From: Octopus sinensis
Lineage: Eukaryota
Assembly (NCBI RefSeq): GCF_006345805.1
Contig: NC_043012.1
Span: forward strand, 55,490,001-55,554,000
Direction of reading: 5' to 3'
Length of the DNA: 64,000 nucleotides
Part shown: positions 3,330-46,590 of the stretch, in pieces
Layout: each line of letters opens with the position of its first letter
Numbering within the stretch: the first letter of the stretch is position 1
Translations under genes and position numbers: made by a program
The notes under the pieces: generated by a model
The model's input: only the letters and a program-made list of their open reading frames with translations
Database searches by the model: none
Told to the model about the DNA's origin: nothing

Positions 3330-4088
3330 TTATTCAGTTTTTATTTGTGTATGCGGTAAATCAAGAGGGAGCTGTTCCCCAGAGACTGTTGTCAAACTGA
3401 CTGGAGAAAGAGTGGTGTTTGATTGAGTGTTTACGTTAGGACAGCTGTTGGACATTAGAGAATCAACTTCAACCTCAATCACAACTGACGTGCTGTAGTC
3501 TGGTTGATTGTGACTAATCATACCTGTTATCATTTGTGACAAATTACAGATGGTCTTCTGATATTGAAGTCCCGTTAAGGTCATTTTGTTGTCAACATGT
3601 TCGTAGTTCAGGAAAGAATCTGATTTGCTTAAATTATTCTGAGACTCTGCTATGGTATTTTGCGAAGAACAGGAAATCGGGTCTGTTTCTTGTTTCACCT
3701 TTATTCCTGGTTGGCTAGGTCCTCCATCACAGTCGTTGTCCATCTGAAATCTGTTTGTTATTTGGTAGTTGAAATATATATTCATCTGTTCTTCATTCGA
3801 AGATTTCAAAGATGTATTGGATTGGTTTTGCATTGTACATTGTTTATATCGATCCACAAGGCTCAAGATATTGTATACACCAAGGATCTTAGCAATGCAC
3901 TCCATGTTGTATAGAATATCTGAATTTAAAACCAGGACTCCTTCATACATATAGGTACAAAAGGCCCAGAGAGCTTCCTCTTGAATGTCAGGAGTAAAAG
4001 TTAACTGTAGGTATTCACCTTTCAGCACATCAGTATTTGGAATTTCCAGAAGTTTGGTACAAGTGGCAATGAGAAGATCTCGATGAAC
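3330..4088 (-). CDS. Coding exon 10 (terminal): rest of BTB/POZ domain and low-complexity tail
   Basis: Starts VHRDLLIATC (BTB AHRxVLAAxS equivalent), then EEALWAFCTYMYEGVLVLNSDILYNMECIAKILGVYNILSLV. Acceptor ctctttcag, phase 0. TAA at 3332-3330. Confidence 0.85.
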   Translation of the reverse strand, partial: VHRDLLIATCTKLLEIPNTDVLKGEYLQLTFTPDIQEEALWAFCTYMYEGVLVLNSDILYNMECIAKILGVYNILSLVDRYKQCTMQNQSNTSLKSSNEEQMNIYFNYQITNRFQMDNDCDGGPSQPGIKVKQETDPISCSSQNTIAESQNNLSKSDSFLNYEHVDNKMTLTGLQYQKTICNLSQMITGMISHNQPDYSTSVVIEVEVDSLMSNSCPNVNTQSNTTLSPVSLTTVSGEQLPLDLPHTQIKTE

Positions 4089-4244
4089 CTGAAAGAGATA
4101 TTATATGAGATATTAATTACTTTCAAAGAAAATAATGATTTTTAAAATCTTTTTTCATACAGGCATAAAGCCACAACTCTGTACAAGACAAACCAAAACA
4201 AGGATCCTCTACGTCAATGATTCTTAACCTTTTTTGTAGTGCCC

Positions 4245-5006
4245 TGGTGGCACATAAAAAGCACCATCCATACGTGACTGATGCCAGTGCCCTCTGATTG
4301 GCTCTTGTGCCGGTGGCATGTAAAAAGCATTATCTGAATGTGATCGATGTCAGGGCCACCTGACTGGTGGCACGTAAAAAGCAGCATACAAACATGGCCA
4401 ATGCCAGTACCTACTGATTGGCTCTCATGCTGGTGGCACATAAAAAGCAGCATCCAAACATGGCCAATGCCAGTACCCACAGACTGGCTCCTATGCCAGT
4501 GGCATGTAAAAAGCACTATCTAAACATGATCGATGCCAGGGCCACCTGATTGGCTCTTGTGCTGGTGGTACTTAATAAGAACCATCTGAATGTGGCCAAT
4601 GCCAGGGCCCCCTGAATGGCTCCTGTGCCAGTGACATGTAAAAAGCACTATCTAAATGTAATTGATGCCAGAGCCACCTGACTGGCTCTCGTGCCAGTGG
4701 TACATAATAAGAACCATCCGAATGTGGCCAATGCTAGAGCCTTCTGACTAGCTCCTGTGTCAGTGGCACGTAAAAAGCACTAACAAAATGTGATCGATGC
4801 CAGGCCCACCTGACTGGCTCCTGTGCTGGTGGCACATAAAGCACCCACTACACTCTCGGAGTGGTTGGCCTTAGAAGGGCATCCAGGTGTAGAAATATTG
4901 CCAGATCAGAATGGAGCCTGGTACAGCTGCTGGTTTTCCAGACCTCAGTCAAACTGTCCAACCCATGCCAGCATGGAAAACGGATGTTAAACGATGATGA
5001 TGATGA
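4245..5006 (+). mobile_element. RTE-derived family E element with ten internal 66-bp repeats
   Basis: gtggcac(a/g)taaaaagcac unit at 4247, 4313, 4367, 4433, 4499, 4565, 4631, 4697, 4763 and 4829. Followed by ggttggc.ttagaagggcatcc (RTE 5'-type motif) and a (GAT)n tail. Confidence 0.75.
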
Positions 5007-5193
5007 TTATGCCTGGTGCCTACCTAAGTTGTCAGTGAGATATCATAGATGATAATTTATAAATTTTATTCAAATGGAAATCATAATACAAGAAGAAAAT
5101 ACTTGAAGAAAACTATTCGAGACAAGAAATACAACATTAGAAATGAATTATCTCTCATTTTATTTTAATAACCATTACAAGTTTTATCATGTA

Positions 5194-5832
5194 CTAGCAG
5201 TATAGCCCGGCGTTGCTCGGTTTTGTAAGGGAAATAACTATATAAGCATTTTTTTAGAGAGTATAGCAAAAAAAATAGCAAAAAATGCATTAAAAATGGA
5301 AAAAATATGATGGTAATTTTTTTTAAAAATCGTTGACTCATCGTAGACATTTTTAGAGAGTTACTTCCCTTATATAATAGCGAAAAAATGCATTAAAAAT
5401 GGAAAAAAAAACGATGGTAAATTTTTTTTTAAATCGTAGACTCATGTAGACGCTTTCTTAGCCATTTCTGTTTTGGTGTCTTCAAGCCATGAAGTCGTGT
5501 TCTAAAAGAACACTGGTCTCCTTGACAACGCATTACGACGTTGATTTCCTTACACTCCCTTCCCCACAGGTGCAGGTGTGAGCATGGACGCCAACTCCGC
5601 CGCCATCGACACACGAAAAATTATGCATTAAAAATGGAATAAAAAATGATGTTAAATTTATTTTAAAATCGTAGACTCATCGTAGACGCGCGCTAATATT
5701 CAGACGGGCTCGATATGAATCACGACTATAAGCTACCCGAATTTGGTTAAACTGCACCGCAAAATGTGGGAGTAGTTAGGAATCTAAATCGAAGGGGACA
5801 GACACTCACACAACTACAGTTTTATATATAGA
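5194..5832 (-). mobile_element. Non-autonomous Helitron
   Basis: On the minus strand: 5' A|TCTATATATAAAA, 3' hairpin gagcaacgccgggc then CTAG|T, which is the canonical AT insertion. Confidence 0.8.
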
Positions 5833-5834
5833 TA

Positions 5835-6390
5835 TACATAGCGCAGTAGTGGTGAGATGTGACAGCAAAGAAAAGCATACATTCACTCTCTGCATGCAAT
5901 TAGACTCGGAAAGTTCGTGAGGAACCCATTGACCCAATTTGCTGACTTTTCCGATAGCACACAGGTCTCAATGAATGGTGAATGACCAAATCCAAGCTTC
6001 TGCTAGTTCCTCAACAGTTACGATGAGATTTTGTTCCACCAGGGTTTTCAGGATGTCCTTGTCAAGTTCTACAGATCTTTCAGGATGAGGCTCATCTTCT
6101 AGGCTGTAGTTTATGGCTCAGGATTTCTGGAACCACCATTGACACTGCCTTACGCTTATTGTCCAATCCCCATATACTGCATTAATATTTCTTGTACTTT
6201 GCACACATTTATATTCTGTTATTCTTTTATATGTTTCAGCCTTGAGGTTGTGGCCATGCTGGATCATGTGTGTGTGTGTGTCTATCTGTCTGTCTGTATG
6301 TATATATGTATATATATGTGTGTGAACAATAATATTTTCAACAGACGTGTTGCAAATGTATCTGATTGTTCTCAAGCTTCAATACTGTGT
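5835..6390 (-). pseudogene. Mariner (DD34D-type) transposase N-terminal relic
   Basis: Minus translation pieces INAVYGDWTISVRQCQWWFQK, SLEDEP, DKDILKTLVEQN, GKVSKLGQWVPHELSESN (WVPHEL motif). Interrupted by a SINE/microsatellite. Confidence 0.8.
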
Positions 6391-6577
6391 GTGTGTGTAT
6401 GTGTGTGTGGGTATGTATGTATATGTATGTATGTATATGTATGTTGTATGTATGTGTTATGTATGTTGTGGTGTGTATGTATGTGTGTGTGTATGTGTGT
6501 GTGTGTTGTATGTATGTATGTATGTATGTATGTATGTGATGTATGTATGTATGTATGTATGAGTCTATGTTTACTTT

Positions 6578-7044
6578 ATTACTAACACAAGCCACTACGG
6601 TTATTTAATGAAAGTCTTCCTCAAATCACTCTCTCTCTCGCTATTTACTCTCTTCAAGAACATTTTCACTCACTCTTAGCTCTTAGCTTCCCATACATTT
6701 TACTCATGTATCTATCAGTGTCATAGACAGAATACTTTCAGTTTAGTCTTCCTCAAATCACTCTGTCGCTATTTACTTTCATTTTATTCGTTGCCCACTG
6801 TGTGTGTGCGTTTGCGTGTGGTGTGTAAACCAGACTAAGAAAAGCATTTGACACACACACCAGAATGTGAGTTTTCTGTAAATTTTGCTTAATTGGAGTT
6901 TAAATTTTAAAAACTGGACCTGGCATGACGCGATGCATTGTACTCTTAAAAATGCTAGGTAAATTGTAATTGAAGAAATCCTATATTGTAGATTTGTATA
7001 ACTCCCAAAGGGAGGCAGATAAAATCTGCCTTTTATAATAAGAG
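6578..7044 (-). mobile_element. Helitron-like element
   Basis: Minus 5' end TCTCTTATTATAAAAGGCAG. The 3' end near 6578 is degenerate. Confidence 0.5.
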
Positions 7045-7103
7045 ACTAGCACTATGACCTGGCAACGCCGGGTCATAGTGCTAGTACATGCATGTGCACA
7101 TAC

Positions 7104-7392
7104 ACACAAGTACTGTCCAAATCTCCGACCAATCACATACAGCTAGCTGGCATTCAATTGGCGTATCAAGTTTCAGGCACTTTGATAGGGTTTTGGATAG
7201 AAAATTCACAAAAAAGTCACTTCTATTGATTTTTTAATGGCCTTGTGGAGTGACTGGGGAAATGTAAAGATGTGCATGACCACCCTTGGACGGTTTTGAA
7301 TGGCCATAGAAAGTGCGAGTCCTCTAACTGAAAAATTGAGGATTTGTATAAAGGACACGCACACAGACATTTTGCCGTTTATATATAGAGAG
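7104..7392 (-). mobile_element. Helitron 5' fragment
   Basis: Minus 5' end TCTCTCTATATATAAACGGCAAAATGTCTGTG matches the start of the complete copy at 33675. Confidence 0.6.
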
Positions 7393-9905: not shown

Positions 9906-10122
9906 TAAGATTGTATGAGTTCCATTACTAATAGCTGCATTGCAAAATAACCTTGATTTCCACATCTGATAAAGTTGGGTCATTACACAACTCTGATGAT
10001 GCTGCATCTGGAATTTGTAGGTTGGTGGCTTTGGAACTGGAGATGGTGTTGGCACCACAGAAGTCTGTGGTTGAACCAAGGCTTGTGGTGAATGTAACTG
10101 AACATTTTTCTTGTTTGGTTGA
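9906..10122 (-). CDS. Coding exon 9, Pro-rich linker plus N-terminal part of BTB/POZ domain
   Basis: QPNKKNVQLHSPQALVQP...YKFQMQHHQSCVMTQLYQMWKSRLFCNAAISNGTHTIL matches the BTB H...L..L.....FCD pattern. Acceptor tttacag, donor TTA|gtaagt, phase 2 to 0. Confidence 0.82.
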
Positions 10123-10160
10123 CTGTAAATGGAACATTCATCATTAATACCTTTGTTTTA

Positions 10161-13348: not shown

Positions 13349-13579
13349 CCATCATCACAAGGTATGTTTGTATTAATATCAAAAGCCTGATTACAAATGG
13401 GTTCTCCAGTTGGAACAGTGGTGCTCGCTTGTCCTGGAATCGACTCATGCAATACACGCTTTCTCCAATAGTCTTGACGAGCTCGAGATTCCCGCTTTTT
13501 AATGCGCCAATATTCTCTCATCCATTCTTTGGGCTTTTTGTTAGCGCCATGTCCCCGAACACTACGGCAATGCTTTAAC
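13349..13579 (-). CDS. Coding exon 8, basic/aromatic helix exon, absent from ORF track
   Basis: 231 nt open: LKHCRSVRGHGANKKPKEWMREYWRIKKRESRARQDYWRKRVLHESIPGQASTTVPTGEPICNQAFDINTNIPCDD. Acceptor ttttcaaag, consensus donor GG|gtaagt, phase 2 to 2. Confidence 0.78.
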
Positions 13580-14188
13580 CTTTGAAAATCAAATAAAAAA
13601 TGATATATGTAAAATCGAATTCAGTTTTCACCCAGCTATGAATTTGTCAACGGAATGCCTGAAGATTCATTTGGATTTTGATTACAATGTTTTTAAAAAT
13701 TTAAGAGCAGTTGGGGGGAAGCAGAGTGCAATACTAAATATAATTAACTGGCACTTTGTCAATTATGCTAACGAGTGTTCCAGTTGATCTGATCAATAGA
13801 ACAGTTTGCTCATGAAATTAAAATGCAAGTGGCTGAGCACGCCACCAACATGTGTACCCTTAATGTAGTTCTCAAGGAGATTCAGTGTGACACAGAATGT
13901 GACAAGGCTGGCCCTTTGAAATACATGTACAACTCATTTTTGCCAACTGGGTGGAGTGGAGCAATGTGAAATAAAGTGTCTTGCTCAAGGACACAACATG
14001 TCGCCAGGAATTGAACTCATGCCCTTATGATTGTGATCCGAATGTGCCTAACCACTATGCCACATGCCTTCACTAAATATACTCTACGTAATTGATTATT
14101 AGCTACAGAAGCAGTATTAATAACAAAAGATAACGAAGTAACCACTGTTCTGACAAGGCAATCCATGTTACGTTAGATATGAAGATAT

Positions 14189-14643
14189 TCTTTTACTCGT
14201 TCCAGTCATTTGGTTGTGGCCATGCTGGGGCACTGCCTTGGAGGGTTTTAGTTGAACAATCGTCCACAGGACTCATTTTTTTAAGCCTAGACCTTATTCT
14301 ATCAGTCTCTTATGCTGAACCACTAAGTTACAGGGATGTAAAGACACCAGCACGAGTTGTCAAGCAATGATGGGGGGGGGCAACAAAGACACAAAGACAC
14401 ATATAGATATAGACACACATGCACGCATACATGCATGCACACACACGCACATACACACACATACACACACACACACATGACAGGCTTCTTTCAGTTTATG
14501 TCTACCCAATTCACTCACAAGGCTTTGGTCAGTCTGAGGTGATAGTAGGAGACACTTGCCCAAGGTGCCACACAGTGGGACTGAAACCTGAACTATATGG
14601 TTGCGAAGCAAGCTTCTTACCACACAGACATGACTGCACCTAT
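14189..14643 (-). mobile_element. tRNA-derived SINE, family A (internal TA/TG microsatellite)
   Basis: Head gcaggagtggctgtgtggtaag, B-box ggttcagtccc, tail cagtcaaatgactgaaacaagtaaaagag. Other copies near 16885, 18780, 19400-19810, 21565, 22190, 30465, 43785, 53310, 58790, 59592, 59778 and 60170. Confidence 0.8.
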
Positions 14644-17726: not shown

Positions 17727-17990
17727 TTTTGATCTGGGAGTTCAAAATCCTGAACTTCTTCCACTGAAATTACCAGAGGTGCTTCACAGGATGCTGGCAT
17801 ATTGCTGATGTTGGCAGAGGTAAGTTGCTGCTGTTGGTGTTCTTGCTGTTGCTGTTGGTGTTCTTGCTGTTGCTGTTGTTGATGCTGTTGCTGTTGTTGT
17901 TGCTGCTGTTGGTCTTCTGATAAGCCTTGACTGGTTATCTCATTACATTCGATGCTAATTGAAGGATTTGTCACAAGTTCGTTTTCATCG
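17727..17990 (-). CDS. Coding exon 7, polyglutamine exon
   Basis: DENELVTNPSISIEC...EDQ9HQ6EHQ5EHQ4LTSANISNMP...ELPDQ. Acceptor tttccttaag, donor AA|gtaaag, phase 2 to 2, 264 nt. Confidence 0.8.
17825..17911 (-). repeat. CAG/CAA coding repeat (29 codons, 24 Gln)
   Basis: Q9HQ6EHQ5EHQ4 within exon 7. Confidence 0.9.
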
Positions 17991-20046: not shown

Positions 20047-20664
20047 TCAATGTAACCTTTTATTTATTTCTTGACTTTTGTTTGTGGTGCAACATACTCT
20101 TGTATTTCGGGTACGCAATTTATGCGCTTTCTGCACAGGAGACTGTCCAGTTTTTCGTCCACCGTTTTTAGATCTCGCACAAGTGTTGATGAACCCAACT
20201 TCATCAATAAGAACATTTTTACACCCAGACTTTTCTGTCAAACGATTTTGACGTTTTCTCTGTGTAAAGTTTTCTGAAGTTAAAGCTCTTTCAGAAATCC
20301 CATTAGACCTTTTGAATGAATAATGGAGTTTTTTAAGGCACTTATCAACGCTTGTTTTCGACAACCTCACATTAAAATATTCAAAAACCATATCGGACAG
20401 CATTTTTAAAGATATATGACGTTTTTTGTCTACTGAGGTTCGCATGAAGTTTTTCATTTCTTCCGAAATTTTACTGCTTCGACAACCTCCTCGATTTTTT
20501 TGCTCGATACGTCCTTCCTGTTTGTATATTTGAACAACAGTTTGAACACTGGTCCGAGGAATAGCTAATATGGAAGCGATTTCGGTTACAGTACGACCTT
20601 CATCATAATTTGATACGATTAATCTTCTAACATCATTTGAAATTTTCTTCTTCTTGTTGACCAT
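20047..20664 (-). pseudogene. IS630/Tc1-like transposase, 3'-truncated
   Basis: HTH (ISNDVRRLIV...TVTEIASILAIPRTSVQTVV...RGG), second HTH (ISLKML...LSKTSVDKCLKKLHYSFKR), first catalytic Asp in VLIDEVGF. No second D or E present. Confidence 0.75.
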
Positions 20665-21335: not shown

Positions 21336-24031
21336 AAATATTTGTTTTTTATGCTAGTTACAATAAAATTTGGCATTCCTACACATGAGTGCCCCTCAAC
21401 TGATTCCTCATAACGTCCAGAAAAATGGATATTATTTTTAATGGAATTTCCTATAAATACGTGTCAGATGATGTAGATTCCGATTATATCGGAATATATG
21501 TGGGGAAAAAATTTTTCCCTGAGACAAGGGGTGAGGAGTTCCAAAAAATTCACATGAGACATCATTCTTTACTCTCGTTTACTCTTTTACTTGTTTCAGT
21601 CATTTGGCTGTGGCCACGCTGGAGCACCGCCTTTAGTCGAGCAAATCGACCCCAGGACTTATTCTTTGTAAGCCTAGTACTTATTTTATCGGTCTCTTTT
21701 GCCGAACCGTTAAGTGACGGAGACATAAACACAGCAGCATATATACGACGGGCTTCTTCCAGTTTCCGTCTACCAAATCCACTCACAAGGCTTTAGCAAA
21801 AGACACTTGCTCAAGATGCCACGCAGTGTGACTGAACCCGGAACCATGTGGTTGCTAAGCAAGCTACCTACCACACAGCCACTCCTCATAATTTTCAGAA
21901 AAATGGGTGATTATTGATGGAATTTTCGATAAAATATCTTTCAGCGTGTGTAGATTACGATTATATCAGAATTTAACATGGTAAAAAGCATTTGGTGGAT
22001 TAATACACATACAAACTAACACACATCACATATTTCTACAAAATGAAACCTGAAATTTCGAAAAAAAAAATTGTGATGTATCTGTGTGTGTGTGAGTGTG
22101 TTCACTATTTTTCTTTTCTCATCAAATACCCATATAATCGTAAATTACACACTCTGAAAAATATTTGTAGAAAATTTCATGAAAAGAATACGTGGCTGTG
22201 TGGTAAGTAGCTTGCTAACCAACCACACGGTTCCGGGTTCAGTCCCACTGCACGGCATCTTAGGCAAGTGTCTTCTGCTATAGCCTCGGGCCAACCAAAG
22301 CCTTGTGAGTGGATTTGGTAGACGGAAACTGAAAGAAGCCTGTCGTATATATGTATGTGTGTGTGTATGTTTGTGTTTGTCCCTCTAGCATTGCTTGACA
22401 ACCGATGCTGATGTGTTTACGTCCCCATCACATAGTGGTTCGGCAAAAGAGACCGATAGAATAAGTACTGGGCTTACAAGGAATAAGTCCCGGGGTCGAT
22501 TTGCTCAACTAAAAGGTGGTGTTCCAGCATGGCCGCAGTCAAATGGCTGAAACAAGTAAAAGAGTAAAAGAGTATCATTCTCAAAGTTATGAGAGAACAA
22601 GTCCAACTCGTGTGACTTTCCTGAAACCCCTCTTTCCAACCCACAGAGCGGTTTTTTCTTAACAATCGGAAAACTACACCATCAGAGGTTCCGTTCAACC
22701 CTGCATTAATGTTTTTTTTCTTTTTTCCGGAGTGTACCAAGTGTTTTTATGTGGCACCAACAGCAGCAGCAATGGAGGCAGCGGACTCGCGGTCGGAGGA
22801 TCGCGGTTTCAATTCCCAGACCAGGCGTTGCGTGTGTTTATTGAGCAAAAACACCTAAAGGTCTATGAGGTTTTGGCAGGGGTTGGTAGCGACTCCTGTT
22901 GTACTCTTTCGCTCCAACTTTCTCTCACTCTTTCTTCCTGTTTCTTGCCCCCAACTTCCTATGCAACCACTGAGCTTGGATGTGCATTCATCCATCCGTC
23001 GATGCTCTCGGTGTCGGGGGTTGACCTGCTTTCTCTTCTGCAGGTCTTACGAATAGCAAAGGACCACGTTTCGGACTTCTCCCAATCCTGAGGCACGATT
23101 TTGCGAGCTCTAGGACGAAGACCGCTGCACTCAACAGCAACAGCAAGGTCACCGAGTAATTTGCAGGATAGCTTTACCTTTCTTCCTTCAATAAAATAAA
23201 ATAGCAGTCTTGTATTGGGGGTAAACTAAAACTCACTTCTCAAAATTGCTAGCTTTTATTTATGTCGTTCTCAGATGAGTCCTCCAGTGGCACCTCCAAC
23301 CATCTTAGTCCTCCAGTAGGATTTTCAAAAGCTGTTTTCACAACTGTTAGACTTTAAAATGCTGTTTAAGGACTGTGAGATACAATCTTATAGCTCTACT
23401 CTAATTATTTTAGGCATAAGATTTGGTAGACAGAAACTGAAAAAAGCCTGGTCATATGTGTGTGTGTGCAGTACTATTTGTGTAGCAAGTTTTCTATGGT
23501 TGGATGCCCTTCCTGTCACCAACCCCCACCTATTTCCAAGTGATCATCATCATCATCGTTTAACATCCGTTTTCCATGCTAGCCAGGAGGCTGCACCAGG
23601 CTCCAGTCTGATCTGGCAGTGTTTCTACAGCTGGATGCCCTTCCTAACGCCAACCACTCCATGAGTGTAGTGGGTGCTTTTTACGTGCCACCGGCACAGG
23701 TGCCAGGGGAGGCTGGCAACGGCCACAATCGGTTGGTGGTTTTTATGTGCCACTGACACGGAAGCCAGTCAAGGTGACGCTGGCATTGGCCACATATGGA
23801 TGGTGCTTTTTACATGCCACCGGCACAGGTCCCAGGGTAGGCTGGCAACGGCCACAATTGGTTGGTGGCTTTTATGTGCCACCAACACGGAAGCCAGTCA
23901 AGGCGACGCTGGCATCGGCCACATATGGATGGTGCTTTTTACGTGCCAGGGGAGGCTGGCAACGGCCACAATCGGTTGGTGCTTTTTACGTGCCACCAGC
24001 ACGGAAGCCAGTCAAGGCTTCCGTGCTGGTG

Positions 24032-26600: not shown

Positions 26601-26794
26601 CTTGGTTTATTTGTTAAAGATGGGAAATTCTGAGAGTTGTCTGCTGCTGCTGTTGTTGGACAAAGAGAAGATAAAGCTGGAAGATCAGAATCATTGGAAT
26701 TGTTTGTCGTTTCCAAAGACCATCTTGAGATATCAGAGGAATCAGGAGTTCTTGATTTCCTGTTCGATACACACCCATTGAGTTCTGGAGACAC
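26601..26794 (-). CDS. Coding exon 6, Ser/Thr-rich linker
   Basis: VSPELNGCVSNRKSRTPDSSDISRW...LTNKP. Acceptor ttaatttag, donor AG|gtattt, phase 0 to 2. Confidence 0.75.
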
Positions 26795-29888: not shown

Positions 29889-31158
29889 ATTCAGCTTATA
29901 TTTAAAGTTTTCATTTTTCATCCACCTCTCTCACATTCACCCGTAATATATCGTAACAAGTTTGTAACAAGATACGACATTTGATCTGTCCATATTCAAT
30001 ACCGGCCACCAACATCATTTATCATGACACATGATTAATGAAGGACGACATCAGATTCATCTGCATCACCATCATCATTAACATTTAACATCCATTTTCC
30101 ATGCTGGCATGGGTTGGATGGTTTGACAGGAACTGAACTAGCAATGTCAGGGGCTGCATCAAGTTCCATACTCTGTATTGACTTGGCTTCTACAGCGGGA
30201 TGCCCTTCCCAATGACAACCACTTTACAAAGTGTACTGGGTTTTTTTTTCATGGCACCAATATAGAAGAGAAACAAATCTTTAGTCTTGCAGATGACACA
30301 ATGACTTCTCTAGTGCTGGTGCCAAAATATAATGTGCCCACTACACAAGGCAATATGATCTGGTGTTAGAAAATTTCCCACAACAAATTCCGTCTGACCC
30401 ATCAAGCATGAAAAAGTGGACATTAAATGACAATGATGATATATATATATATATATATATATATATGGTTCCGAGTTCAGTTCCACAGTGGGGCACCTTG
30501 AGCAATTGCCTTCTACTATAGCCTCGGGCTGACCAAAGCCTTGTGAGTGGATTTGGTAGACGGAAACTGAAAGAAGCCCGTCGTATATATGTATATATAT
30601 ATATGCATCTGTGTTTGTCCCCCAAGCATTGCTTGACAACCGATGCTGGTGTGTTTATGTCCCCGTTACTTACCGGTTTGGCAAAAGAGACCGATAGAAT
30701 AAGTACTGGGCTTAGAAAAGAATAAGTCTCGGGGTCGAGTTGCTCGATTAAAGGCGGTGCTCCAGCATGGCCGCAGTCAAATGACTGAAACAAGTAAAAG
30801 AGTAAAAGAGTATATATATATATTACCGTGATCACCGTGACCGACCAGGCTATCAGATGTTGCTACACATCGCTGGTCACAATGCGTTTCGCATTGTTTT
30901 AACCATTAAATGACGCCACCCCGCTGGCTAAGGGAGCAGGCCAACAGAAGAAAGAGTGAGAGAAAGTTGCAGCGAAAGAGTACAGCAGGGATTGCCACCA
31001 CCCCCTGCCGGAGCCTCGTGGAGCTTTAGGTGTTTTCACTCAATAAACACTCACAATGCCTAGTCTAGGAATCGAAACCGTGATCCTATGACCGCGAGTC
31101 CACTGCCCTAACCACTGGGCCATTGCATCTCCACACACACACATATATATATTATTAT

Positions 31159-31308: not shown

Positions 31309-31526
31309 AAATTCTATAATTATGAGCATAATTATAATTAGGGTTCAGCAAAATTTGCTTCACCCCATACCGAAATTTAGAAATAGCAGTCAAAATACTA
31401 TTCTACTACTATAAGATATCTTATGGTAGTAGAATAGTATTTTAACTGCTATTTCTAAATTTCGGTATGGGGTGAAGCAAATTTTGCTGAACCCTAATTA
31501 TAATTATGCACATAATTATAGAATTT
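31309..31526. repeat. 218-bp spacerless palindrome
   Basis: Centre GAT|ATC at 31417/31418, 109-bp arms with 3 mismatches found by hand. Confidence 0.92.
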
Positions 31527-31543
31527 ATATATATATATATATT

Positions 31544-33525
31544 AGGGTGGGTAACGACGCTGGCGCGGGTGGGGCTTTGATCAACTTGGATCAGAGTAAA
31601 GCCTTCGATAGGGTCGACCATCGGTACCTGGCAGCTGTCCTCAAGGCAGCCGGCTTCGGTCCAGTCTTCCGCGGGTGGATCGCTGCTTTATACAGCAACA
31701 TCTGCTCGGTGATACGGGTGAACGGTCACCTTTCGGAACCGTTCGACATCTCGCGTTCGGTCCGCCAAGGATGCCCTCTCTCTTCCCTCTTGTACATTTT
31801 GACTCTCGAGCCATTACTGCGCAAGTTGGAGGCTTTGAGGGGCATCCCGCGCGATCTAGGAGGCGGAAACAGCGTGTCTGCTTATGCCGACGACGTCACC
31901 GTGGTGGTGTCGAGCCACAGGCACATTGGCCTGATTGGCGAGACGCTAAACCAGTACGAAGCGGTGACAGGGGCAAAGATTAACGTGGAAAAGTCTGTGG
32001 GCTTGCAACTGGGCACCTGGAGAGGCAAGCCCATGCCGTCCAACAGCGTCGTAGGGCGCTGGACAGACGGACCCGTTAAACTGCTCGGGGTCTGGTTCGG
32101 TCCGGACCTCCAGGTGGATAAGAACTGGGAAGAGGTGACGAGCAGGGTGGCACGTCTCACCCAGAAATGGGCCGAGAGGAAGCTGTCCCTGAAAGGTCGA
32201 GCGGAGGTGGCGAATGCGTACATCGCATCCGTCATCTATTACCGCTTGACCGTCGTCCCTTGTCCCGACCGCTGGTTGGCCAAGCTGGTACGCCTGCTCT
32301 TCGACTTTTTGTGGAAGGGTCAGGTGCCACTGGTCAGGCGATCCATCTGCTGTCAACGACCGCTGAACGGAGGCCTTGGACATGCGCTCAGGCTGCGGCA
32401 TCTCAAGCGCTTCCTAGACGGTGAACAGGTGTGGTCGTCTTTTGTCAGACGCGATTTTCCGCAGCTCGTCTCTTTGACGGAGCTGCAGACCTGGATCAAA
32501 CGTAGACCGAGAAAGGGCGCTTGGCACCTCGAGTGCCGTCAAGCCCTCTCCGCCCTCCACCAGGCGGGCAATGCGGTCGGTTACAGCTCCACTCTAGCAT
32601 TCTATAGAGGGTTAGTGGAGGAAAAATGCGACGACGTTCTCGGGGAAACTCTAGGCGTTGAAGATGACGAACTGTGCGGTCTGTTCGGAAGGACTTTCGG
32701 GCCGGGGCCGATGGATAATTTCCAGAGGTCTCTCGCTTGGCAGTGCTACCGAGGGGCTCTGCCTGTTCGAGATAAACTCTACCGGCACGGAAGTGCCGTC
32801 AGCCGGGCCTGCCCGAGGTGTTGCCAGGACGACGAAACCGTCCTGCACGCACTTGTCCAGTGCCCGAGTATTGCTGAAATATGGGTTTATGTCGAACAGC
32901 TACTGTCACGTGTAGGACGGATCCGACTATCGGCCGAATCCATAGTGAAGATTGCCCCACCGACCTCCTTTAACAAGGAGGGCGAGGCCGTGTTCTTGTG
33001 CCTAGTGGCTGTGGCGAAAGAGGTGGTGTGGTGGACTCGTTTGAAAGGGCTAAAGTCAGACACTTTCCTCTTTGGTCAAGGCCTCATCAACTTTTTCAAG
33101 TTTCACTTGAAAAGGAAAATGAGGTTAGAGAGGAAAGTGCTGTCCGATAGCAAGTTTTATGAAAGGTGGGTGAATTGTGCGAGACTGGCCTGTATAAATG
33201 GACCAGTTCTCAGGTTTCGCCTGTGATTTCAAAGAAAAAGGTAATGTAAAAGGAGAAGAAAGGGGACTCTCTACACCCCCTTTTTTTGACCAGGCTCCCG
33301 TTGGCTTTTGTAGGGTTTTTTCCACCAGGAACCTTTCGAGACGTCTCCCCCATTTGGGAGTTTTTCATTGTTGAATTTTATAAGTTGTTATAAAGATTTT
33401 TACTCGATGTTTTAAAAAAACGGCAAAACCCTTTGTAACCTTTCGTCCTGTCTTGTCCCTTTATGTAATCATGCGTGTCAGCCCTTGTGGCCAATAAAAA
33501 AGAATTGATTATTATTATTATTATA
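31544..33525 (+). mobile_element. 5'-truncated Tx1-clade (L1 group) non-LTR retrotransposon with intact ORF2 portion to 33226
   Basis: RT motifs LDQSKAFDRVDH, VRQGCPLS and YADD, plus C-terminal zinc-binding CPRCCQDDETVLHALVQC. 3' UTR ends with AATAAA and (TTA)n. GC/CpG-rich with no stops. Confidence 0.92.
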
Positions 33526-34000: not shown

Positions 34001-34330
34001 ATTATTGTCATTTAATGTCCACTTTTTCATGTTTGATGGGTCAGACGGAATTTGTTGAGGGAGATTTTCTACAACCAGATGCCCTTCCTGTTACTAACCC
34101 TCACCTGCTTTCAAACAAGGTAATATTTTCCTGTGGGCAGACATGGTTTTCATGGAAGACCAGAAATGAATAACATTAGTTGTATGATGGGGATGTTCGT
34201 TTACAACCATCACATACGAGACAAGAATACACGCACACACTCATATATAGATAGTTACATACATTCATACACACACAGATACACTGAAAACAGAAATAAG
34301 AAAAGACAGGTGACAAACAAATAATCTTAC

Positions 34331-34457
34331 CTGAAAGCCTAAATCAATCAAAGATTTCAAGAGCGTATTGATCTTAGGATGAACAACAAAATGTTTGTTA
34401 CTGAATTTCTGGTGATCAAATTTGGAGCCTTTCATGGGATTAATATCAAACAAACAC
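34331..34457 (-). CDS. Coding exon 5, end of SAMD3-like region
   Basis: CLFDINPMKGSKFDHQKFSNKHFVVHPKINTLLKSLIDLGFQ (INPxKGSK...VxPK+xTL motif). Acceptor ttgatag, donor CAG|gtaaga, phase 2 to 0. Confidence 0.88.
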
Positions 34458-36149: not shown

Positions 36150-36318
36150 CTTTGAACAAATTCCAGTGTTGCAGGTGCCTCTTGATTGTAGCAGATGTTA
36201 AAGCAGTAGTAAGATGCGAACATCATACAGAGGCCAGTTACGAAACTGGTGATCTGTTCGTTGACAACAGTACCATCAACACAAAGCAGAAACTTACAGG
36301 AATTCAACAACGAATCAC
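36150..36318 (-). CDS. Coding exon 4, SAMD3-like C-terminal region
   Basis: GDSLLNSCKFLLCVDGTVVNEQITSFVTGLCMMFASYYCFNICYNQEAPATLEFVQR, with the typical FASYYxFNIxY...ATLEFxQR motif. Acceptor tttcag, donor AG|gtttgt, phase 1 to 2. Confidence 0.9.
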
Positions 36319-38401: not shown

Positions 38402-38468
38402 CGCAGGCAATAAGACATGGAGTTTCAGGAATGTTGGAGGATTCTAAGTCTGTTACAGTATAATTCAC
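38402..38468 (-). CDS. Coding exon 3 (67 nt), absent from ORF track
   Basis: Reads VNYTVTDLESSNIPETPCLIAC-G, supplying the expected P-x-T-P-C-I-I-x-x-G motif before GDSLL. Pyrimidine-rich acceptor ...cttacatag and donor G|gtatgt. Phase 0 to 1 bridges exons 2 and 4 exactly. Confidence 0.85.
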
Positions 38469-39172: not shown

Positions 39173-40506
39173 CAGAATGGGGCAAAAAGGATGGACATTT
39201 TTGAAAAATTCAGAAAATCATTAATTTTAGCTGCAAACAACTTTTATTGACATCAATGTGTTTGTATTGTATTAGCATTTGTCAAAATCAAGTGTGGAAA
39301 ACAACATCCATCACGTAGTGTCCATTTTCATTGATGCATTTCTGAAGGCGTTTTTGGAACTTGGCCTCCACTCTCTCCAGCATTGCTCTGTCGATTCGAG
39401 TGACTTCCATGTGAATAGCTTCCTTCGAATCGTCCAATGTATGGGGCTCATGTGCATACACACATGCCTTGAGGTTTCCCCACAAGAAATAATCGCACAT
39501 GGACAAATCAGGGGACTGAGAGGGCCAAGGAATGTCAGCAAACCTGAAAATGAGGTAGTCACTGAAGAGAGGGCGAAGAACGTCCATTGATGCTCTGGCT
39601 GTGTGGGCCATCGCTCCATCCTGCTGAAACCACACACGTAGAATAGGCATGCATTTTCATCATAATTCAGGCACAAAAAGTTGTTTATCATCTCGAATTT
39701 TCACTCGGAGTTCACAGTCACAGCATTTCCATTATTGTCTTCAAAAAGTAAGGACCAATGACAACAGCTCTTCCAACAGCGCACCAGATCATCGCTTTTG
39801 GTCTGTGCAGTGGTCTTTCATTCAGTTCTCTCAGATTTTCAGTAGCATAATAATGACAGTTCTGTTGATTCACCATGCCATTGAGATGAAAATGAGCTTC
39901 ATCACTCATTAACAAAATGAGGTTGTCATTTGTCTCTAAATTTGCTTCCATCTGACGTGCGAAGTTAAGCCGCTGTGCATAGCCCCGTGGTTTCAACTGT
40001 TGCCCAATGACCAATTTGTACAGGTGGAAATGCAGGTCTTCATGCAAAATACGCCTTACTGATCATTTATCAATGTGAAGTTCAGTGGAATGCCTCCAAG
40101 CAGAGTGATTCGGACTCTGTATCAAAGCTTGTCTGACACATTCCCCATTTTCCGGGGTTCGTACCATTTGTGGCACCCCCACCAGTCTCCTATTCATTAG
40201 TGTACTTCATGTACGAAATGCATTCACCCAACATAAGATTGCGTTATGGGTGGGAACAGCCTGGCTTTGGTGAATATTGGAGTGGTGCTGAAACTCGTGC
40301 TGAACTGCTCTGATAGACTCATTATTCTTCATGTAACTATCATAAGCAAACACACAATGCTCTATCATCCACAGCACCATGGCCTCACCTGAAAAGAAAA
40401 AATATAAAGACACCATGGACCAAATGGTACCTGTCAGACATGTCTCTTTCCCTGGGGCTGAGTAATAGATATTTCAAAAAATGTCCATTCTCTCTGCCCC
40501 ACCCTG
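39173..40506 (-). mobile_element. Full-length but frameshifted Tc1/mariner element, DD41D-like
   Basis: TIRs CAGAATGGGGCAAAAAGGATGGACATTTTTG / CAAAAAATGTCCATTCTCTCTGCCCCACCCTG with TA TSD. Transposase pieces FAYDSYMKNNES, MSDEAHFHLNG.VNQQN, FQQDGAMAHTA, WPSQSPDLSMCDYFLWG. Confidence 0.88.
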
Positions 40507-40783: not shown

Positions 40784-42627
40784 TGGTACAAGAGGAAATA
40801 GATGTTGTATATCTTCACCGAGATATACCATTAGAAGTTGCATCATTAATGCAACATTGATATCATTCTCAGAGTTCTGTTTCTCACATTTCTTGTAGTT
40901 GGCAGCTGTTTGGAGAATCTGTTCTATATCTGTTATGTTAGTAATTAAAAAAAGGGATTTCATTACATTAATAATTGTTTCCACTTTACTATTGTTGAGA
41001 AAGTCATTTATAACGCTTTTCATGTCGATTGTGGTCAGTTCTTTGAAATGAACCATTAGCCCAATTTCTTCAAAGAGAAAAGGCCAGTCTTTGTGTAATG
41101 TGGTGATGGAAGCACCATTATTGATGTCTTTTCTTTGGAAAAAGAAAGTAGTTATCATGTCTTTTTCCACAAATTCAACATCCCACTTTGAACTGTAGAT
41201 GCTCCGCAGTAAATCCTGTTTCATTCTCAGGCTCCATTTTGTTTCATTTGGGGGTAATTTTAGTGGCTGCCAGTTAATGCAGCCGTAGTTATTCAACAAC
41301 TTACTTGATTTCTGATTGCCAGAATCAGATTTTTGCTGAGTCTTAGTCCAAGACATTAACTTCTTTTGGTAAAGGAACTGTCCACGGTCAAACCGATTGA
41401 TATTTTCAACACGAGATTGCAACTGTTTCAAAATGGCCTCAAAACCAGTTTGTCTACCATTGGGACTTAGTGTATCATCCATCAAGGATTCAGGATATTC
41501 GGTCACCATTTTATGTGCAATGAAAAATAACTGTCTTCGGTTTGGTCTTGCACAGAATTTTATTGCTTCTGCAACAACAACACGAATCATCTCTCGACGA
41601 AGGTTTGATTCCGGACGTTGTTTGTTCTTCAAAGCATGAATAAGAGCCGGAGGCATTTTATCAATGGGGATCTGAAAATTTTGGACCCATTCTGAATTTT
41701 CATCAGCAAACATATTAGAATTGTTTTCAGGATATAATCCAATAGGTAAATTAACTGAAAATATATCCAAAGGTTGTTGTTGCTGCTGCTGTTTATCATT
41801 GTTTATATTTGCTAGAGGTAATAATTCAGATGTGTGGGTCATCAGACTGTTGTCTGACATCTTGTCAAAATTTTTAGAATTCAAAGTCTCTGATGTAGTC
41901 GAACAGTTGCTATCATCACTAACAATAATAGGATCAGCTGCAGACAATTTCGGTTCACTGTTCTCCGTATTCCATCCAGCATTATCGATTGCAGGCTGTG
42001 GTGATATCTCAACTACCTCTTTTCTGTCTCCGCCATAAACTGAGCACAGACGAGTGAGAGAAGACAAGCTAGGACTGATGCCTTTAGAACTATTATCATC
42101 TCTTTCAAGCGATGATGCCATCAGAGAAAGTTTGTCCCGTTTTGACTGATTCCTTACCCTTGCTCTGTTGACGCCAGAAGAAATATCTTTCACAGGATTA
42201 TTACCTGCAGAGAGGTTTGGGGTCACTTCAACAACCTGAGTCGATGGCAGAATAACATTGTTCATATTACTGTACTGTGGTATGTTACGGTTCTGATATT
42301 GAGTTACATTAGACAGCTGAGGGCTGGACTGATTGGTTGGAGATGAGCCAGGCATACTGAGCGGGAGAAGAGGTGAAGTGTTGTTATGCGGATACATGAT
42401 GGAGTTGTGTGAGTTTTCTACAATAGTTTGTTTTGATACATTTGACGTGGTCATTTTCGGTAGGGGAAGTTGAACACAAACTCCTGAAGTCGGCAATGAA
42501 CTATGTAGGTTTCCTATCACAGGTTGCTGTAAGTTGTTATTCTGGAAAGGTGCTCCAATCTTTGATATCATATTCTGTATTTGACCAGGTAAAGAGTACA
42601 AAGTAGTTGGTGGTTGGTTCAAGTCAA
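40784..42627 (-). CDS. Coding exon 2: low-complexity region followed by the SAMD3-like conserved body
   Basis: Open for 1844 nt. Motifs FQIPIDKMPPALIHALKNKQRPESNLRREMIRVVVAE, YPESLMDD, GFEAILKQLQSRVENINR, YGCINWQP, FFFQRKDINNG, WPFLFEEIGLMVHFKELT. Acceptor tttttag (phase 1, C+TT=Leu). Donor CCA|gttagt, phase 0. Confidence 0.9.
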
Positions 42628-44291
42628 CTAAAAAAAATAAAAGGTCAGATATTATCAGCTGTACGACGAGGGATACAAAATATTAATTTACATTAATTCT
42701 TCTCATACAAACTCACCTGAGACTACCCCCACTCCTAAAATTGCTTCTAATTATATTGGGTTTAAATTTTGCCACATGGCCAGCAATTCTGGGTGGGGGT
42801 AAATCGATTACATCGAACCCAGTGCTCAACTTGTACCTTTTTTATCAACCCCAAAAGGATGAAAGGCAAAGTTGACCTGCACAAAATTTGAACTCAGAAT
42901 GTAAAAACAGATGAAATACCACTAAGCATTTTGCCCGGTGTAGTAATGATTCTACCAGCTTGCCACCTTAAATGATGTCGCCCCTTTCAAGCCTAGCTAG
43001 GCTCATGGGCCCGGTTTCTATGGCGTATGTGTTCCTCAGCTGGATGGGATGCCAGTCCATCGCAGTGTTACTCATTTTTGCCAGCTGAGTGGACTGGAGC
43101 AACGTGAAATGAAGTGTTTTGCTCAAGAACACGTGTTGCCCGGTCCAGGAATCAAAACTGCAATCTTACGATCATGATGCTGACACCCTAACCACTAAGC
43201 CACACACCTCCACGCTTACCACCTCACTGCCTCTAATTATATTAATTCATTTGACACTCATCTGAGACCAGCCAGGAAGGCTTCTGTTTCTCTCATTTTA
43301 AAATGTTTATTTTTCAATTAAATCAAATTAAATCTTTTTATCTTAATACTATATATAAGGCAGTGAGCTGGCAGAATCATTAGCACACCAGACAAAATGC
43401 TGAGCAGCATTTTGTCTGTCTTCACATTCTGAGTTCAAACTCTACCAAGGTCGACTTTGCCTTTCATCTTTTCAGGGTCAATAAAATAAGTTGAGCACTG
43501 GGGATGTTGTAACTGACTTACCTGCTTCTCTGAATCCACTGGCCTTGTGCCAAAATGTGAAACTATTATTGCGTAAGTATAATTTTTTACGTCATGTTAC
43601 ATGAAACATCGCTTAATGAAAAAGATACTTTGACTAAATCCTTCCAAATTTCAAGATTATTTTCCAAATTAGGCTGTGAATTTCATTGCAAATATAGTCA
43701 TGAAATGTTTAATGATAGAAAATATAAACTGACACACTTTTATAAAACACAAATATATATATATATATATATATATATCTTTTACTCTCTTTTTTACTCG
43801 TTTACTTGTTTCAGTCATTTGACTGTGGCCATGCTGGAGTACCACCTTTAGTCAAGCACATCAACCCCAGGACTTATACTTTGTAAGCCTAGTACTTATT
43901 CTATTGGCCTCTTTTGCTGAACCGCTAAGTTACAGGGACATAAACACACCAGCATCGGTTGTCAAGCGATGTTGGGGGACAAAAACAGACACACAAACAT
44001 ATACACACACATACATACATACATACATATATATATATATCATCATCATCATCATTTAACGTTCGCTTTCCATGCTAGCATGGGTTGGACGGTTCAACTG
44101 GGGTCTGGGGAGCCCGAAAGCTGCACCAGTCCAGTCAGATCTGGCAGTGTTTCTACAGCTGGATGCCCTTCCTAACGCCAACCACTCCGAGAGTGTAGTG
44201 GGTGATTTTATGTGCCACCGACACAGGTGCCAGACGAGGCTGGCAAACGGCCACGCTCGGATGGTGTTTTTTATGTGCCACCGACACAGGT

Positions 44292-44333
<42 letters not shown>

Positions 44334-44688
44334 CGACAGGCTTCTTTCAGTTTCCATTTACCAAATCCATTCACAAGGCTTTGGTTGACCCGAGGTTATA
44401 GTAGATGACACTTGCCCAAGATGCCATGCCATGGGACTGAACCCGGAACCATGTAGTTCGTAAGCAAGCTACTTACCACACAGCCACTCCAGCACCTATA
44501 TATATATATATATATACAAATTGAGATAGGGGTTGTAAATGCAACTCTCCATGGGATAACATATATCCAGTATACTGCTAGTGAAGTACCCAACAGAGTT
44601 AATACATAAATGTTAAGGATTGCGATGCAATCAATTCATTTACTGTATTATATGGGCAAAGGTAAAATGATTTACCACAAATTACTAA

Positions 44689-44913
44689 TACAAATAAGAA
44701 AATGGAGAAATACATCTAAATCAAATATCAATTACCAGATAATAATCAATCACATACTTTATTAAACCATTCCTTTATGTACAATGATTTGTTCTGCTTT
44801 TTTATGTTTAACCCTACAGTCTCTTATATGGTGGTTTAATAAAGTATGTGATTGAGTTTTATCTGGTAATTGATATTTGATTTAGATGTATTTCTCCATT
44901 TTCTTATCTTGTA
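44689..44913. repeat. Inverted repeat with about 80-bp arms and a 62-bp spacer next to (TA)n
   Basis: tacaaataagaaaatggagaaatacatc...ttattaaacca versus tggtttaataaag...ctccattttcttatcttgta. Confidence 0.85.
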
Positions 44914-44918
44914 TATAT

Positions 44919-44965
<47 letters not shown>

Positions 44966-46385
44966 GGACATAACTGGATTCAATCCCACTGTAGCCCTGG
45001 ACTATGTGAATAGATTTGGCAGATGAAACTAAAAGCAACTTGTAGTAAATATATGCGTGTGTGTGTGTGTGTGTGTGTGTACCCTTGTCTATATATCACA
45101 TGATGGTTGTAAATGAATACCATCATGATTCAAGAGAGATTGTTTGCTTCCAGACTTCTGTGACAAACATGGCCAGGCAAAGGGAAATATTTATTTGCTT
45201 AGAAGCAAGTGATGCTTGATGACTGGAAGGGCATCTAATTAAAGAAAATTTACCTCAGCAAATTTCATCCTGACCCTTGCAAGCATAGAAAAGGGGACAT
45301 TAAATTATGAGGACAGTGATTGAAATATTCAGAGTAGTATCTTCAATTTGGTTGTTATGGTTACAATGTTTCAGCCATTGTAAATTCCAGTCTTCTTCAG
45401 AAGCTTGCCCAGTTCAGTAATGTTTGCAGAATTTGGAATAAAATCTTTTATAAAATCCACTGACAGACTGTTCTCATTTCTTTGTCCATTCCAAGGACAT
45501 TTTCATTCAAGTTGTTTTTCTACTTGTTTTGTCACTTATTTATTCCACTAGAATTAGAGTTTGTTTTGTTATGTATTGTTTGACAAATGCATGGATTGAA
45601 CTCACACCTATTAGCTTTAGCATTAACCCTTTCACTGCCTATGGAGCATAGGCCATAAATGACATTTTCTACAACCCTAGGCTGTCTTTTCTGCTTCCCT
45701 CCAGTTGGATCCCTGCTTTATCCAAAGCATTGAATCCATTGATAACTAAAAGAAACAAGATTCTTCTCCCAGATCTTGCAGGGTTTGAACTGTCATTTGA
45801 TATTTCTGTGACTTTGTGTTTTTTTAGGTAGGGGTGTTGGCCTTAAGCAAACCCATTTTTACCTCTGGGGAAAAGGTAGTCTATATTATTTTGGCCCCTA
45901 TCCTTTGACATGTCCAGCATGCAAGGCTCAACCAAAAGCTTGTGTTCCTCTAACATAGCTCTCAAAGTCACTGAGGCACTTCACCCTTTAGCGTTTAAAC
46001 TGGCCATATGAAGCCCAAATATTTTACCTGTTTTATGATCAAACTGACCAAATCGGGCCACTCACACCTACCTTACAATGTCATTTTAAAATTATACAAT
46101 CACATAATTGAAATCTTAAAACTACAAGACAATGTATGCTAAATTCAAAACTGTATGAATAAATAAGGATTACATTTGACAAAGTAATCTGAATGTTAAA
46201 TGGTTAAGCCACCACACAGCATCAAGGACCCAACTTATATACAATGCTTCAATACTAAAATAAGAGATAGGTTCGTCATGGTTGGAATACTTTTGATCAT
46301 AGGTTTTCTAAACAAAAACAAAAACAGCAATAACATGATATGAATACAGAGCTTAATTCCTTAAAAACAATATAAACATATTTAC

Positions 46386-46590
46386 GTTTGGTTTGTTGAA
46401 GAAGTTTGCGTATCTGGATTGGTTTCAGAACTGATGAAAGATCTGAAGCTTCAACATACTGCAGGTCCTCAAGAGTTTCCACGCCAATGTCCCTCAGGGT
46501 TTTTGCAAGAGTTTTTACACCTGAAATAGGCTGTGTTGGTAAGGCTTTTGAAATGCATTCTTCCAAGGGGTCTAGACAATCTGAAGCCAT
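46386..46590 (-). CDS. Coding exon 1 of SAMD3-like/BTB fusion gene; N-terminal SAM-like domain
   Basis: MASDCLDPLEECISKALP...LRDIGVETLEDLQYVEASDLSSVLKPIQIRKLLQQTK resembles the SAM-like N-terminus of SAMD3-like proteins. Acceptor ttttcag at 46607 (exon starts 46606, ATG at 46590). Donor C|gtaaat after 46386, phase 1. Confidence 0.85.

Follow-up and report, generated by a model that had tools for sequence, protein, structure and literature searches.

A single gene of Octopus sinensis likely joins a SAMD3-family protein to a basic motif and a divergent BTB/POZ domain

We analyzed a 64,000-nucleotide (nt) stretch of the Octopus sinensis genome (RefSeq assembly GCF_006345805.1, contig NC_043012.1, positions 55,490,001 to 55,554,000 of the forward strand), referred to here as the window, and all coordinates below are those of the window. 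Our data make it likely that positions 3330-46590, read on the minus strand, represent a single protein-coding gene, LOC115220330, in which a protein of the SAMD3 family is fused to a basic motif and a BTB/POZ domain, and whose product would serve as a nuclear scaffold or adaptor. A preliminary description of this DNA, made from its letters alone, had proposed such a single fusion gene in ten exons. The fusion is supported by what we found, namely the junction of the two halves in five Octopus gene models and both halves within the spliced open reading frame (ORF) of a distant relative, and the exon count has been revised to eleven. The gene is already public in RefSeq, ENA and UniProt, so that what is new here is the reading of its architecture and of how that architecture is distributed. 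A literature search returned no paper on the gene or on the combination of SAMD3 and BTB.

The two halves meet where exon 5 is spliced to exon 6 (34331 to 26794), a phase 0 junction into an exon that contains no ATG. An exhaustive HMMER search with residues 379-1358 had as its top match a 1385-residue (aa) O. vulgaris protein, the 90% cluster of which contains O. sinensis XP_029646290.1 (1384 aa), O. bimaculoides XP_014776561.1 / XP_052829144.1 (1375 aa), two O. vulgaris models (CAI9733694/5), and the 639-aa O. bimaculoides UniProt entry A0A0L8H0C4. The junction is crossed by five models in this cluster, from three Octopus species, including A0A0L8H0C4, which has its start inside exon 4 and still crosses it. 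Orthologues of the fusion, which the preliminary description had suggested looking for in other cephalopods and molluscs, are thus found among the O. bimaculoides and O. vulgaris models.

Independent data on the junction came from an RNA-derived Logan contig, SRR8281693_2966 (L004, 4083 nt), which has a single uninterrupted 1293-aa ORF, P0164, at its positions 152-4033. The source of L004 is a more distant species, probably a cephalopod. P0164 could be aligned along the whole Octopus protein, with 44% identity to that of O. sinensis, from the SAM-like module and the body, through a linker of weak similarity, to the basic motif, BTB domain and tail. Comparison of L004 with a genomic contig of a related species (L001) revealed blocks of 76-88% nt identity that abut in L004 and lie 2-6 kb apart in L001, the borders of which are the Octopus exon 1/2, 2/3 and 3/4 junctions. 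L004 thus represents a spliced mRNA, and because the exon 5/6 junction occurs in the models of three species and both halves occur in one ORF of that mRNA, we conclude that the halves belong to one gene. A word-index homologue search with the junction-spanning segment, for RNA-derived ORFs across exons 5 and 6, gave no match. Two further Logan contigs that match the last exon (L002 and L003) were considered as transcripts and rejected, as both are genomic and hence uninformative on splicing.

The point at which the halves are joined is also the point at which the family normally ends. The preliminary description had stated that SAMD3-type proteins finish just after an INPxKG...LxD motif, and this agrees with our observation that, of 52 relatives whose sequence extends this far, 45 stop no more than 30 residues past it, typically 2-12 after LxxL[IV]D. 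The seven exceptions were the five Octopus models together with P0068 and P0129, and the Octopus protein runs 580 residues past the usual end. Family details are based on the best 150 of 1362 matches, so that there may be a BTB fusion elsewhere in the family; among those 150 the extension is carried solely by the Octopus cluster. No BTB domain was found in any of the 67 full-coverage relatives scanned (0/67), and the architecture is on that basis lineage-specific. A few relatives have other additions, including a TNP-like RNase H, a His-Me endonuclease zinc-loop, RFX and C2H2. As far as our searches reach, the extension looks cephalopod-specific. The earlier claim of an architecture that could not be recognized stands with respect to its lineage specificity, but not to the gene itself, whose model was already in the public databases. 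Overall, a SAMD3-family gene that normally ends after the LIDL motif lost its stop and gained downstream exons, and this fusion predates the split of Octopus from the L004 lineage.

Both halves of the gene have been maintained. All 11 exons are present in the same order in O. bimaculoides, with 94-98.5% nt identity, except for the exon encoding the polyglutamine (polyQ) tract, which has 87% identity and indels; the mean identity of 150-nt intron flanks in the same comparison was ~81%, and the agreement of the exons is well beyond what chance would give. Ratios of nonsynonymous to synonymous substitution rates (dN/dS) were calculated by the Nei-Gojobori method between O. sinensis and its O. bimaculoides orthologue. 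These were 0.154 for exons 1-5, 0.10 for the body, 0.114 for exons 9-11 and 0.018 for exon 9 by itself, and both halves are under purifying selection (dN/dS ~0.1-0.15). Exon 6 had 96.9% nt identity with no indel. Exon 11 was found with 90% aa identity in the genomic contigs L002 and L003, which are from another octopod. The range occupied by the orthologous coding sequence (CDS) is 24.9 kb in O. bimaculoides (L006) versus 43.3 kb in O. sinensis, a difference presumably due to intronic transposon load.

When the gene model was rebuilt, the AG/GT borders of all ten exons proposed earlier were confirmed, and their end phases (1, 0, 1, 2, 0, 2, 2, 2, 0) and totals (4077 nt, 1358 aa) were reproduced. 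The model was nevertheless incomplete. The first sign of a missing exon was that an exact look-up of the 1358-aa product among public proteins gave no match, and in the public models the polyQ and basic exons are separated by a further 26 residues, from which a 78-nt in-frame exon was located at 16354-16277. With this exon added as exon 8, the model has 11 coding exons, a CDS of 4155 nt and a product of 1384 aa that is identical, residue for residue, to XP_029646290.1 (LOC115220330, annotated as an "uncharacterized protein"). Positions 3330-46590 correspond base for base to the annotated gene range on chromosome CM016874.1 (GCA_006345805.1), and no other annotated gene is called within 10 kb of that range.

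The exons, all on the minus strand, are as follows. Coding exon 1 (46386-46606; acceptor 46606, ATG 46590, donor GTAAAT after 46386) encodes aa 1-68, and exon 2 (40784-42627, 1844 nt, aa 69-683) encodes a disordered N/S/Q/P-rich linker and then, from aa 379 at 41698, the SAMD3-like body up to its residue 305. Exon 3 (38402-38468, 67 nt, aa 684-705) is present in XP_029646290.1 and conserved in L001, and is the sole 67-nt open AG..GT interval with strong splice sites. The body continues through exon 4 (36150-36318, 169 nt) and ends in exon 5 (34331-34457, 127 nt, donor CAG/GTAAGA) with INPMKGSK...LIDLGFQ, its last residue being aa 804. Exon 6 (26601-26794, 194 nt, aa 805-868), an S/T/N-rich linker, joins the two halves. 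The interrupted polyQ tract (aa 895-924, 17914-17825) is in exon 7 (17727-17990, 264 nt), and exon 8 (78 nt, phase 2 to 2, bordered by AG and GTGAGT) encodes NFRYNIMNTTNELQENPTKFVPKIKNR. Exon 9 (13349-13579, 231 nt) contains the basic/aromatic motif KKPKEWMREYWRIKKRESRARQDYWRKR (aa 997-1024, 13539-13456). Exon 10 (9906-10122, 217 nt) encodes a spacer rich in P, after which the BTB domain begins at aa 1095 (10019), and exon 11 (3330-4088, 759 nt including the TAA stop) encodes the remainder of the domain to aa 1216 (3837) and then the tail. A frame of exon 10 reading ...LSDVEIK was rejected, as it gives a truncated BTB domain; the correct frame reads ...LFCNAAISNGTHTIL.

The gene also extends beyond its start codon. 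The O. vulgaris model CAI9733694.1 starts with MCAGRNGHSLRS at a leader exon that is present in the window ~15 kb 5' of the start codon (3' end at 61649-61683, minus strand, donor TC/GTAACT at 61649/61648) and that joins acceptor 46606 in frame, adding 17 N-terminal residues from the in-frame upstream ATG at 61683. With at least one leader exon, the gene span is therefore ~58 kb rather than 43 kb. Just upstream of the leader exon, at 61780-61900, is a G+C-rich stretch with a CACGTG E-box. At the other end, the TAA stop is inside GAATAAATG (3330-3340, minus strand), where a canonical AATAAA overlaps the stop at 3334, and the 3' untranslated region could consequently be extremely short. The L004 transcript contig has 50 nt after its stop.

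The N-terminal module of ~60 residues is SAM-like, although not proven to be a SAM domain. The SAM call in the preliminary description holds insofar as aa 9-68 (46566-46387) resemble Pfam SAM_TNK, but the scores of 20.1-23.9 bits are below the cut-off of 25. SAM_TNK was matched by 12 of 30 N-terminal modules of the family and SAM_2 by one of the 30, and the pattern LPxL...GVE..DL.yV...DL...L.PIQ.RKLL is common to 57 of the relatives fetched. No PDB SAM match for aa 9-68 was found by sequence or by family profile. A word-index homologue search with aa 1-683 also gave no match, in which low-complexity words probably swamped the 8000 candidates.

The body (aa 379-804, ~426 aa) belongs to a SAMD3-like family, as had been proposed, and this family is real, very large and metazoan-wide, with the qualification that its closest members are all named "uncharacterized"; these are proteins of teleosts, a sea spider, an abalone, a priapulid and an octocoral. 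The exhaustive HMMER search, with clusters at 50% identity, gave 1362 matches with E ≤ 1e-3, of which 623 had E ≤ 1e-10 and 101 had E ≤ 1e-30. The typical match covers query positions 1 to ~423, and hundreds of relatives can be aligned to aa 379-804 over their full length at 30-38% identity. Family motifs in the body include RREMIR, YGCxNW, QRxDIN, WPFLF, HFxxLTG, YYxFN and TLEFxQR. In a 68-sequence family alignment there were 17 near-invariant columns, and these include D452, C518, R567, W583, P584, H595 and E673 (alignment A1, aa 452-762, exons 2-5). The conserved Asp/Cys/His/Glu set might mark a catalytic or metal site. No Pfam model matched the body when the separate halves of the protein were scanned. 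A confident AlphaFold2 model was built from the 68-sequence alignment, with a mean predicted local distance difference test (pLDDT) score of 88.9 and a predicted template modeling (pTM) score of 0.72. It consists mainly of helices, and a three-stranded sheet lies close to its C-terminus. The sequence that we take to be that of human SAMD3 matched the family hidden Markov model (E 5.5e-21), which we use as a lead only, the SAMD3 name being unverified. We know of no biochemical role for the SAMD3 family, including the human immune-cell gene.

In the extension, the polyQ tract, part of a disordered Q-rich linker, is 9 residues shorter in O. bimaculoides than in O. sinensis and O. vulgaris and is reduced to QQQQ in P0164; the tract itself is thus not conserved. 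In the helix-like motif of exon 9, PKEWMREYWRIKKRESRARQ(D/E)YW.KR, 24 residues show no change from Octopus to P0164. Direct reading of the motif reveals a fit to the pattern of a classical bipartite nuclear localization signal (NLS), KK/RR-x10-IKKRE. Exon 9 had no match in Pfam or in the PDB. The motif was also considered as a basic leucine zipper (bZIP) and rejected, having neither the invariant Asn nor a leucine zipper and no Pfam bZIP match.

The C-terminal domain (aa 1095-1216) appears to be a BTB/POZ domain of the long form, divergent in sequence and of BCL6/ZBTB/BACH/KLHL type. Here the earlier call is backed by homology to BTB domains in the PDB over the whole domain, but not by Pfam, for which the match to PF00651 (aa 1111-1216, profile positions 2-102 of 110) reaches 10.7 bits (E 0.61) where 20.5 are required, and a Pfam scan of the isolated C-terminal half found no BTB match. 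All 34 matches in a single-sequence phmmer search of the PDB were BTB domains (best E 1.2e-3, IVNS1ABP, of the KLHL family), as were all 31 obtained with a three-sequence cephalopod profile (best E 5.6e-6, of BCL6/ZBTB type, positions 5-121 of 130). The matched structures were ZBTB17/BCL6, IVNS1ABP, BCL6, BACH1, myoneurin and ZBTB8A/18, that is, mostly of BCL6/ZBTB/BACH type, and the alignments include the N-terminal beta1/alpha1 extension. Octopus and P0164 have 50% identity in this domain, with 61 invariant positions over 130 columns. Two of the models are already named "BTB domain-containing protein" in UniProt. In the acidic/Ser-rich tail, the elements VKQE (3698-3687), QPDYS, VVIEVEVDSL (3485-3456) and the C-terminal IKTE (3344-3333) are conserved in P0164 as well. 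By their pattern, VKQE and IKTE would be psi-K-x-E sites for attachment of the small ubiquitin-like modifier (SUMO), and VVIEVEVDSL a candidate SUMO-interaction motif (SIM).

Based on these modules, we infer that the protein is most likely a nuclear, self-associating, multivalent scaffold or adaptor. The basic motif would direct nuclear import and the BTB domain would mediate dimerization, with the SAM-like module possibly providing a second self-association surface; there may thus be two self-association modules, as had been suggested in the preliminary description. The Q-rich linkers may add multivalency. The SAMD3 body could be the cargo- or target-binding part, brought into BTB-dependent complexes of co-repressor or Cullin-3 type, and contacts of SUMO and SIM in the tail may tune those complexes.

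Comparison with known systems shows both likenesses and differences. The protein resembles the SAMD3-like family in its N-terminal module and, end to end, in residues 379-804, and differs from it by the 580-residue continuation and by a disordered insert of 310 aa that separates the SAM-like module from the body. Its BTB domain is similar over its whole length (profile E 5.6e-6 to 1e-2) to those of BCL6, ZBTB17 (Miz-1), ZBTB8A/18, BACH1, myoneurin and IVNS1ABP. However, the octopus domain is C-terminal where theirs are N-terminal, and zinc fingers, bZIP, BACK and Kelch are not detected with Pfam; in the ZBTB factors C2H2 zinc fingers follow an N-terminal BTB domain, but here the domain occupies aa 1095-1216 of the 1384 residues, with no zf-C2H2 match. 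BACH1 and BACH2 likewise combine a BTB domain with a conserved, strongly basic segment (...KKRESRARQ... in the octopus protein), but the octopus segment precedes the BTB domain, has neither the Asn/Ala-Ala of bZIP proteins nor leucine heptads, and is a better fit to a bipartite NLS. Proteins of SPOP type (MATH-BTB) share the order of a recognition-type domain and then a BTB domain, which suggests an adaptor logic, whereas the octopus protein has no MATH domain and no 3-box or BACK region. Polyhomeotic and TEL/ETV6 are comparable in that a SAM-type module is combined with a second interaction domain in a putative nuclear protein, although in the octopus protein the SAM call is sub-threshold and there is no SAM match in the PDB.

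Several observations weigh against reading the region as one gene for a nuclear scaffold or adaptor. In O. sinensis itself, the support for the exon 5/6 junction comes from annotation pipelines together with the orthologous transcript. Exon 6 has a dN/dS of 0.64 on 6 substitutions, with no clear constraint when considered alone, and its flanks are equally conserved; its frame is intact, and a recognizable, weakly alignable counterpart is present in P0164. There may also be shorter isoforms, SAMD3-only or BTB-only. The SAM-like module reaches at most 23.9 of the 25 bits needed in Pfam, and Pfam does not call the BTB domain (10.7 versus 20.5 bits). A single-sequence AlphaFold2 prediction of the latter was poor (pLDDT 43.2), its order of strands and then helices being compatible with the BTB fold, a three-stranded sheet packed on a five-helix cluster, but unreliable. 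Foldseek found no significant neighbor of the body model, the best E being 2.3 in the PDB and 1.7 in BFVD. Lastly, nuclear localization, dimerization and the use of SUMO or SIM are predictions from sequence patterns.

The alternative that survives best concerns the role of the gene and not its structure, and is that the protein is a substrate adaptor for Cullin-3 (CUL3), in which the BTB domain recruits CUL3 and the SAMD3-like body recognizes the substrate, as MATH does in SPOP and Kelch in KLHL proteins. Many BTB proteins are adaptors of Cullin-3 RING ligases (CRL3), the order of recognition domain and then BTB is SPOP-like, and the best single-sequence match in the PDB was to the KLHL-family protein IVNS1ABP. 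The PDB matches were, however, mostly of the BCL6/ZBTB/BACH type, and the BTB domain is followed directly by low-complexity sequence, with no helical region like BACK or the 3-box and no Pfam BACK match. The NLS-like motif and the SUMO/SIM-like tail would suit a role at nuclear bodies or chromatin, though they are compatible with CRL3. We therefore rank a BCL6/ZBTB-like scaffold or co-repressor role first and an SPOP-like CUL3 adaptor second, the latter being unlikely but worth keeping in mind.

It is improbable that the SAMD3-like half came from a mobile or selfish element that inserted upstream of a BTB gene and was domesticated as a chimera. Points in favor of such an origin are the very large size and the patchiness of the family, with 1362 clusters at 50% identity, the occasional fusion of a relative to a TNP-like RNase H, a His-Me endonuclease zinc-loop or RFX, and introns here that are full of transposons. 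In opposition to this origin, the exon-intron structure of the SAMD3 half is common to two cephalopod lineages, dN/dS is ~0.1, Pfam detects no transposase or reverse transcriptase domain in the protein, and no stand-alone ancestor of the basic motif and BTB domain was found. A further alternative, that the C-terminal domain has degenerated and lost the fold or function of a BTB domain, would be in keeping with its sub-threshold Pfam score and its poor single-sequence model, but we consider it very improbable given its conservation against the distant orthologue (50% identity, 61 of 130 columns invariant), the dN/dS of 0.114 for exons 9-11, and the alignments to solved BTB domains that run full length, including the beta1/alpha1 extension.

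The weakest alternative is that pipelines merged two adjacent genes, a SAMD3-like gene of exons 1-5 that would end by read-through or polyadenylation after 34331, and a polyQ/basic/BTB gene of exons 6 or 7 to 11 with its own promoter, for which it can be said that relatives normally end at the exon 5 point, that read-through of the exon 5 donor meets a stop after 21 codons with an ATTAAA at 34016, that in A0A0L8H0C3, a 713-aa model of O. bimaculoides of older date, the BTB half begins with an intronic ORF, and that exon 6 alone is without clear constraint, but which is hardly credible when exon 6 has no ATG and continues exon 5 in phase 0, the junction is found in five other models from three species, the spliced mRNA of the distant orthologue has both halves and a homologous linker in one ORF, and what A0A0L8H0C3 uses as its alternative first exon is a helix-turn-helix (HTH) ORF of a Tc1-like transposase, which at 86% aa identity evolves faster than the exons of the gene. 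An exact look-up of the read-through SAMD3-only product among public proteins gave no match.

That HTH ORF is one of many traces of mobile elements in the window. It lies in intron 6 at 20047-20664 (minus strand, in the sense of the gene) and is an intact 205-codon ORF of the Tc1/Sleeping-Beauty (SB) transposase type (Pfam HTH_SB, E 1.4e-8). In O. bimaculoides it is also present, with in-frame indels, and it has a terminal phase 2 donor (AAAAG/GTTACA) that is spliced to the polyQ exon in A0A0L8H0C3. The HTH start of that model reflects either an error of prediction or an alternative first exon of transposon origin, which would give an HTH and BTB isoform. Antisense to the gene in intron 5 (31472-33226, plus strand) is a 584-codon ORF of a non-LTR (long terminal repeat) retrotransposon (RVT_1 E 1.3e-19, zf-RVT E 7e-9). 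In intron 2 (39291-40416, minus strand), several adjacent open frames resemble by eye a decayed mariner-type transposase (...WFQQDGAMAHTA...), and a Pfam scan of two of these frames gave no match. Transposon debris between the leader exon and exon 1 was observed at 47798-48085 (plus), 49128-49532 (minus), 50516-50923 (plus) and 51596-52000 (minus), including fragments of a Tc3/SB-type HTH and of an endonuclease-reverse-transcriptase (Exo_endo_phos_2, E 2.7e-6).

A dispersed repeat of ~350 bp, similar to short interspersed elements, was also noted, with 27 further blastn matches to the copy at 30301-30850 (67-93% identity, both orientations), for example, at 14186-14598, 22229-22575, 53314-53644, 58785-59123 and 59812-60153. 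Many of the spurious six-frame ORFs listed for the window are due to this repeat. Immediately downstream of the gene, at 2790-3300, is a long simple-sequence block skewed between purines and pyrimidines, which causes the GC-skew spike at 2001-4000. When translated, the block gives poly-His/Pro/Ser from one strand and poly-Asp/Glu/Gly from the opposite one. In L002 and L003, too, the last exon is followed by sequence with a similar His-rich translation. Rfam and tRNA scans of the whole window gave no match.

Stable natural fusions often join proteins of the same complex or pathway. The fusion in Octopus is therefore a testable hint that SAMD3-type bodies are nuclear and work in oligomeric assemblies of the BTB type, the processes hinted at being transcriptional repression or ubiquitylation by CRL3. 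A far-reaching form of this reading is that the protein is a new cephalopod nuclear regulator, a doubly self-associating Q-rich scaffold (SAM-like polymer module and BTB dimer, with SUMO/SIM motifs) that carries the orphan SAMD3 body into repressor or CUL3 complexes, and hence a "Rosetta stone" for its family. We regard this form as speculative and unlikely; if it were true, a natural fusion would point to the pathway of the entire SAMD3 family. If the hint is wrong, the gene would be one more lineage-specific domain shuffle. It represents a clean case of lineage-specific exon capture in cephalopod genomes.

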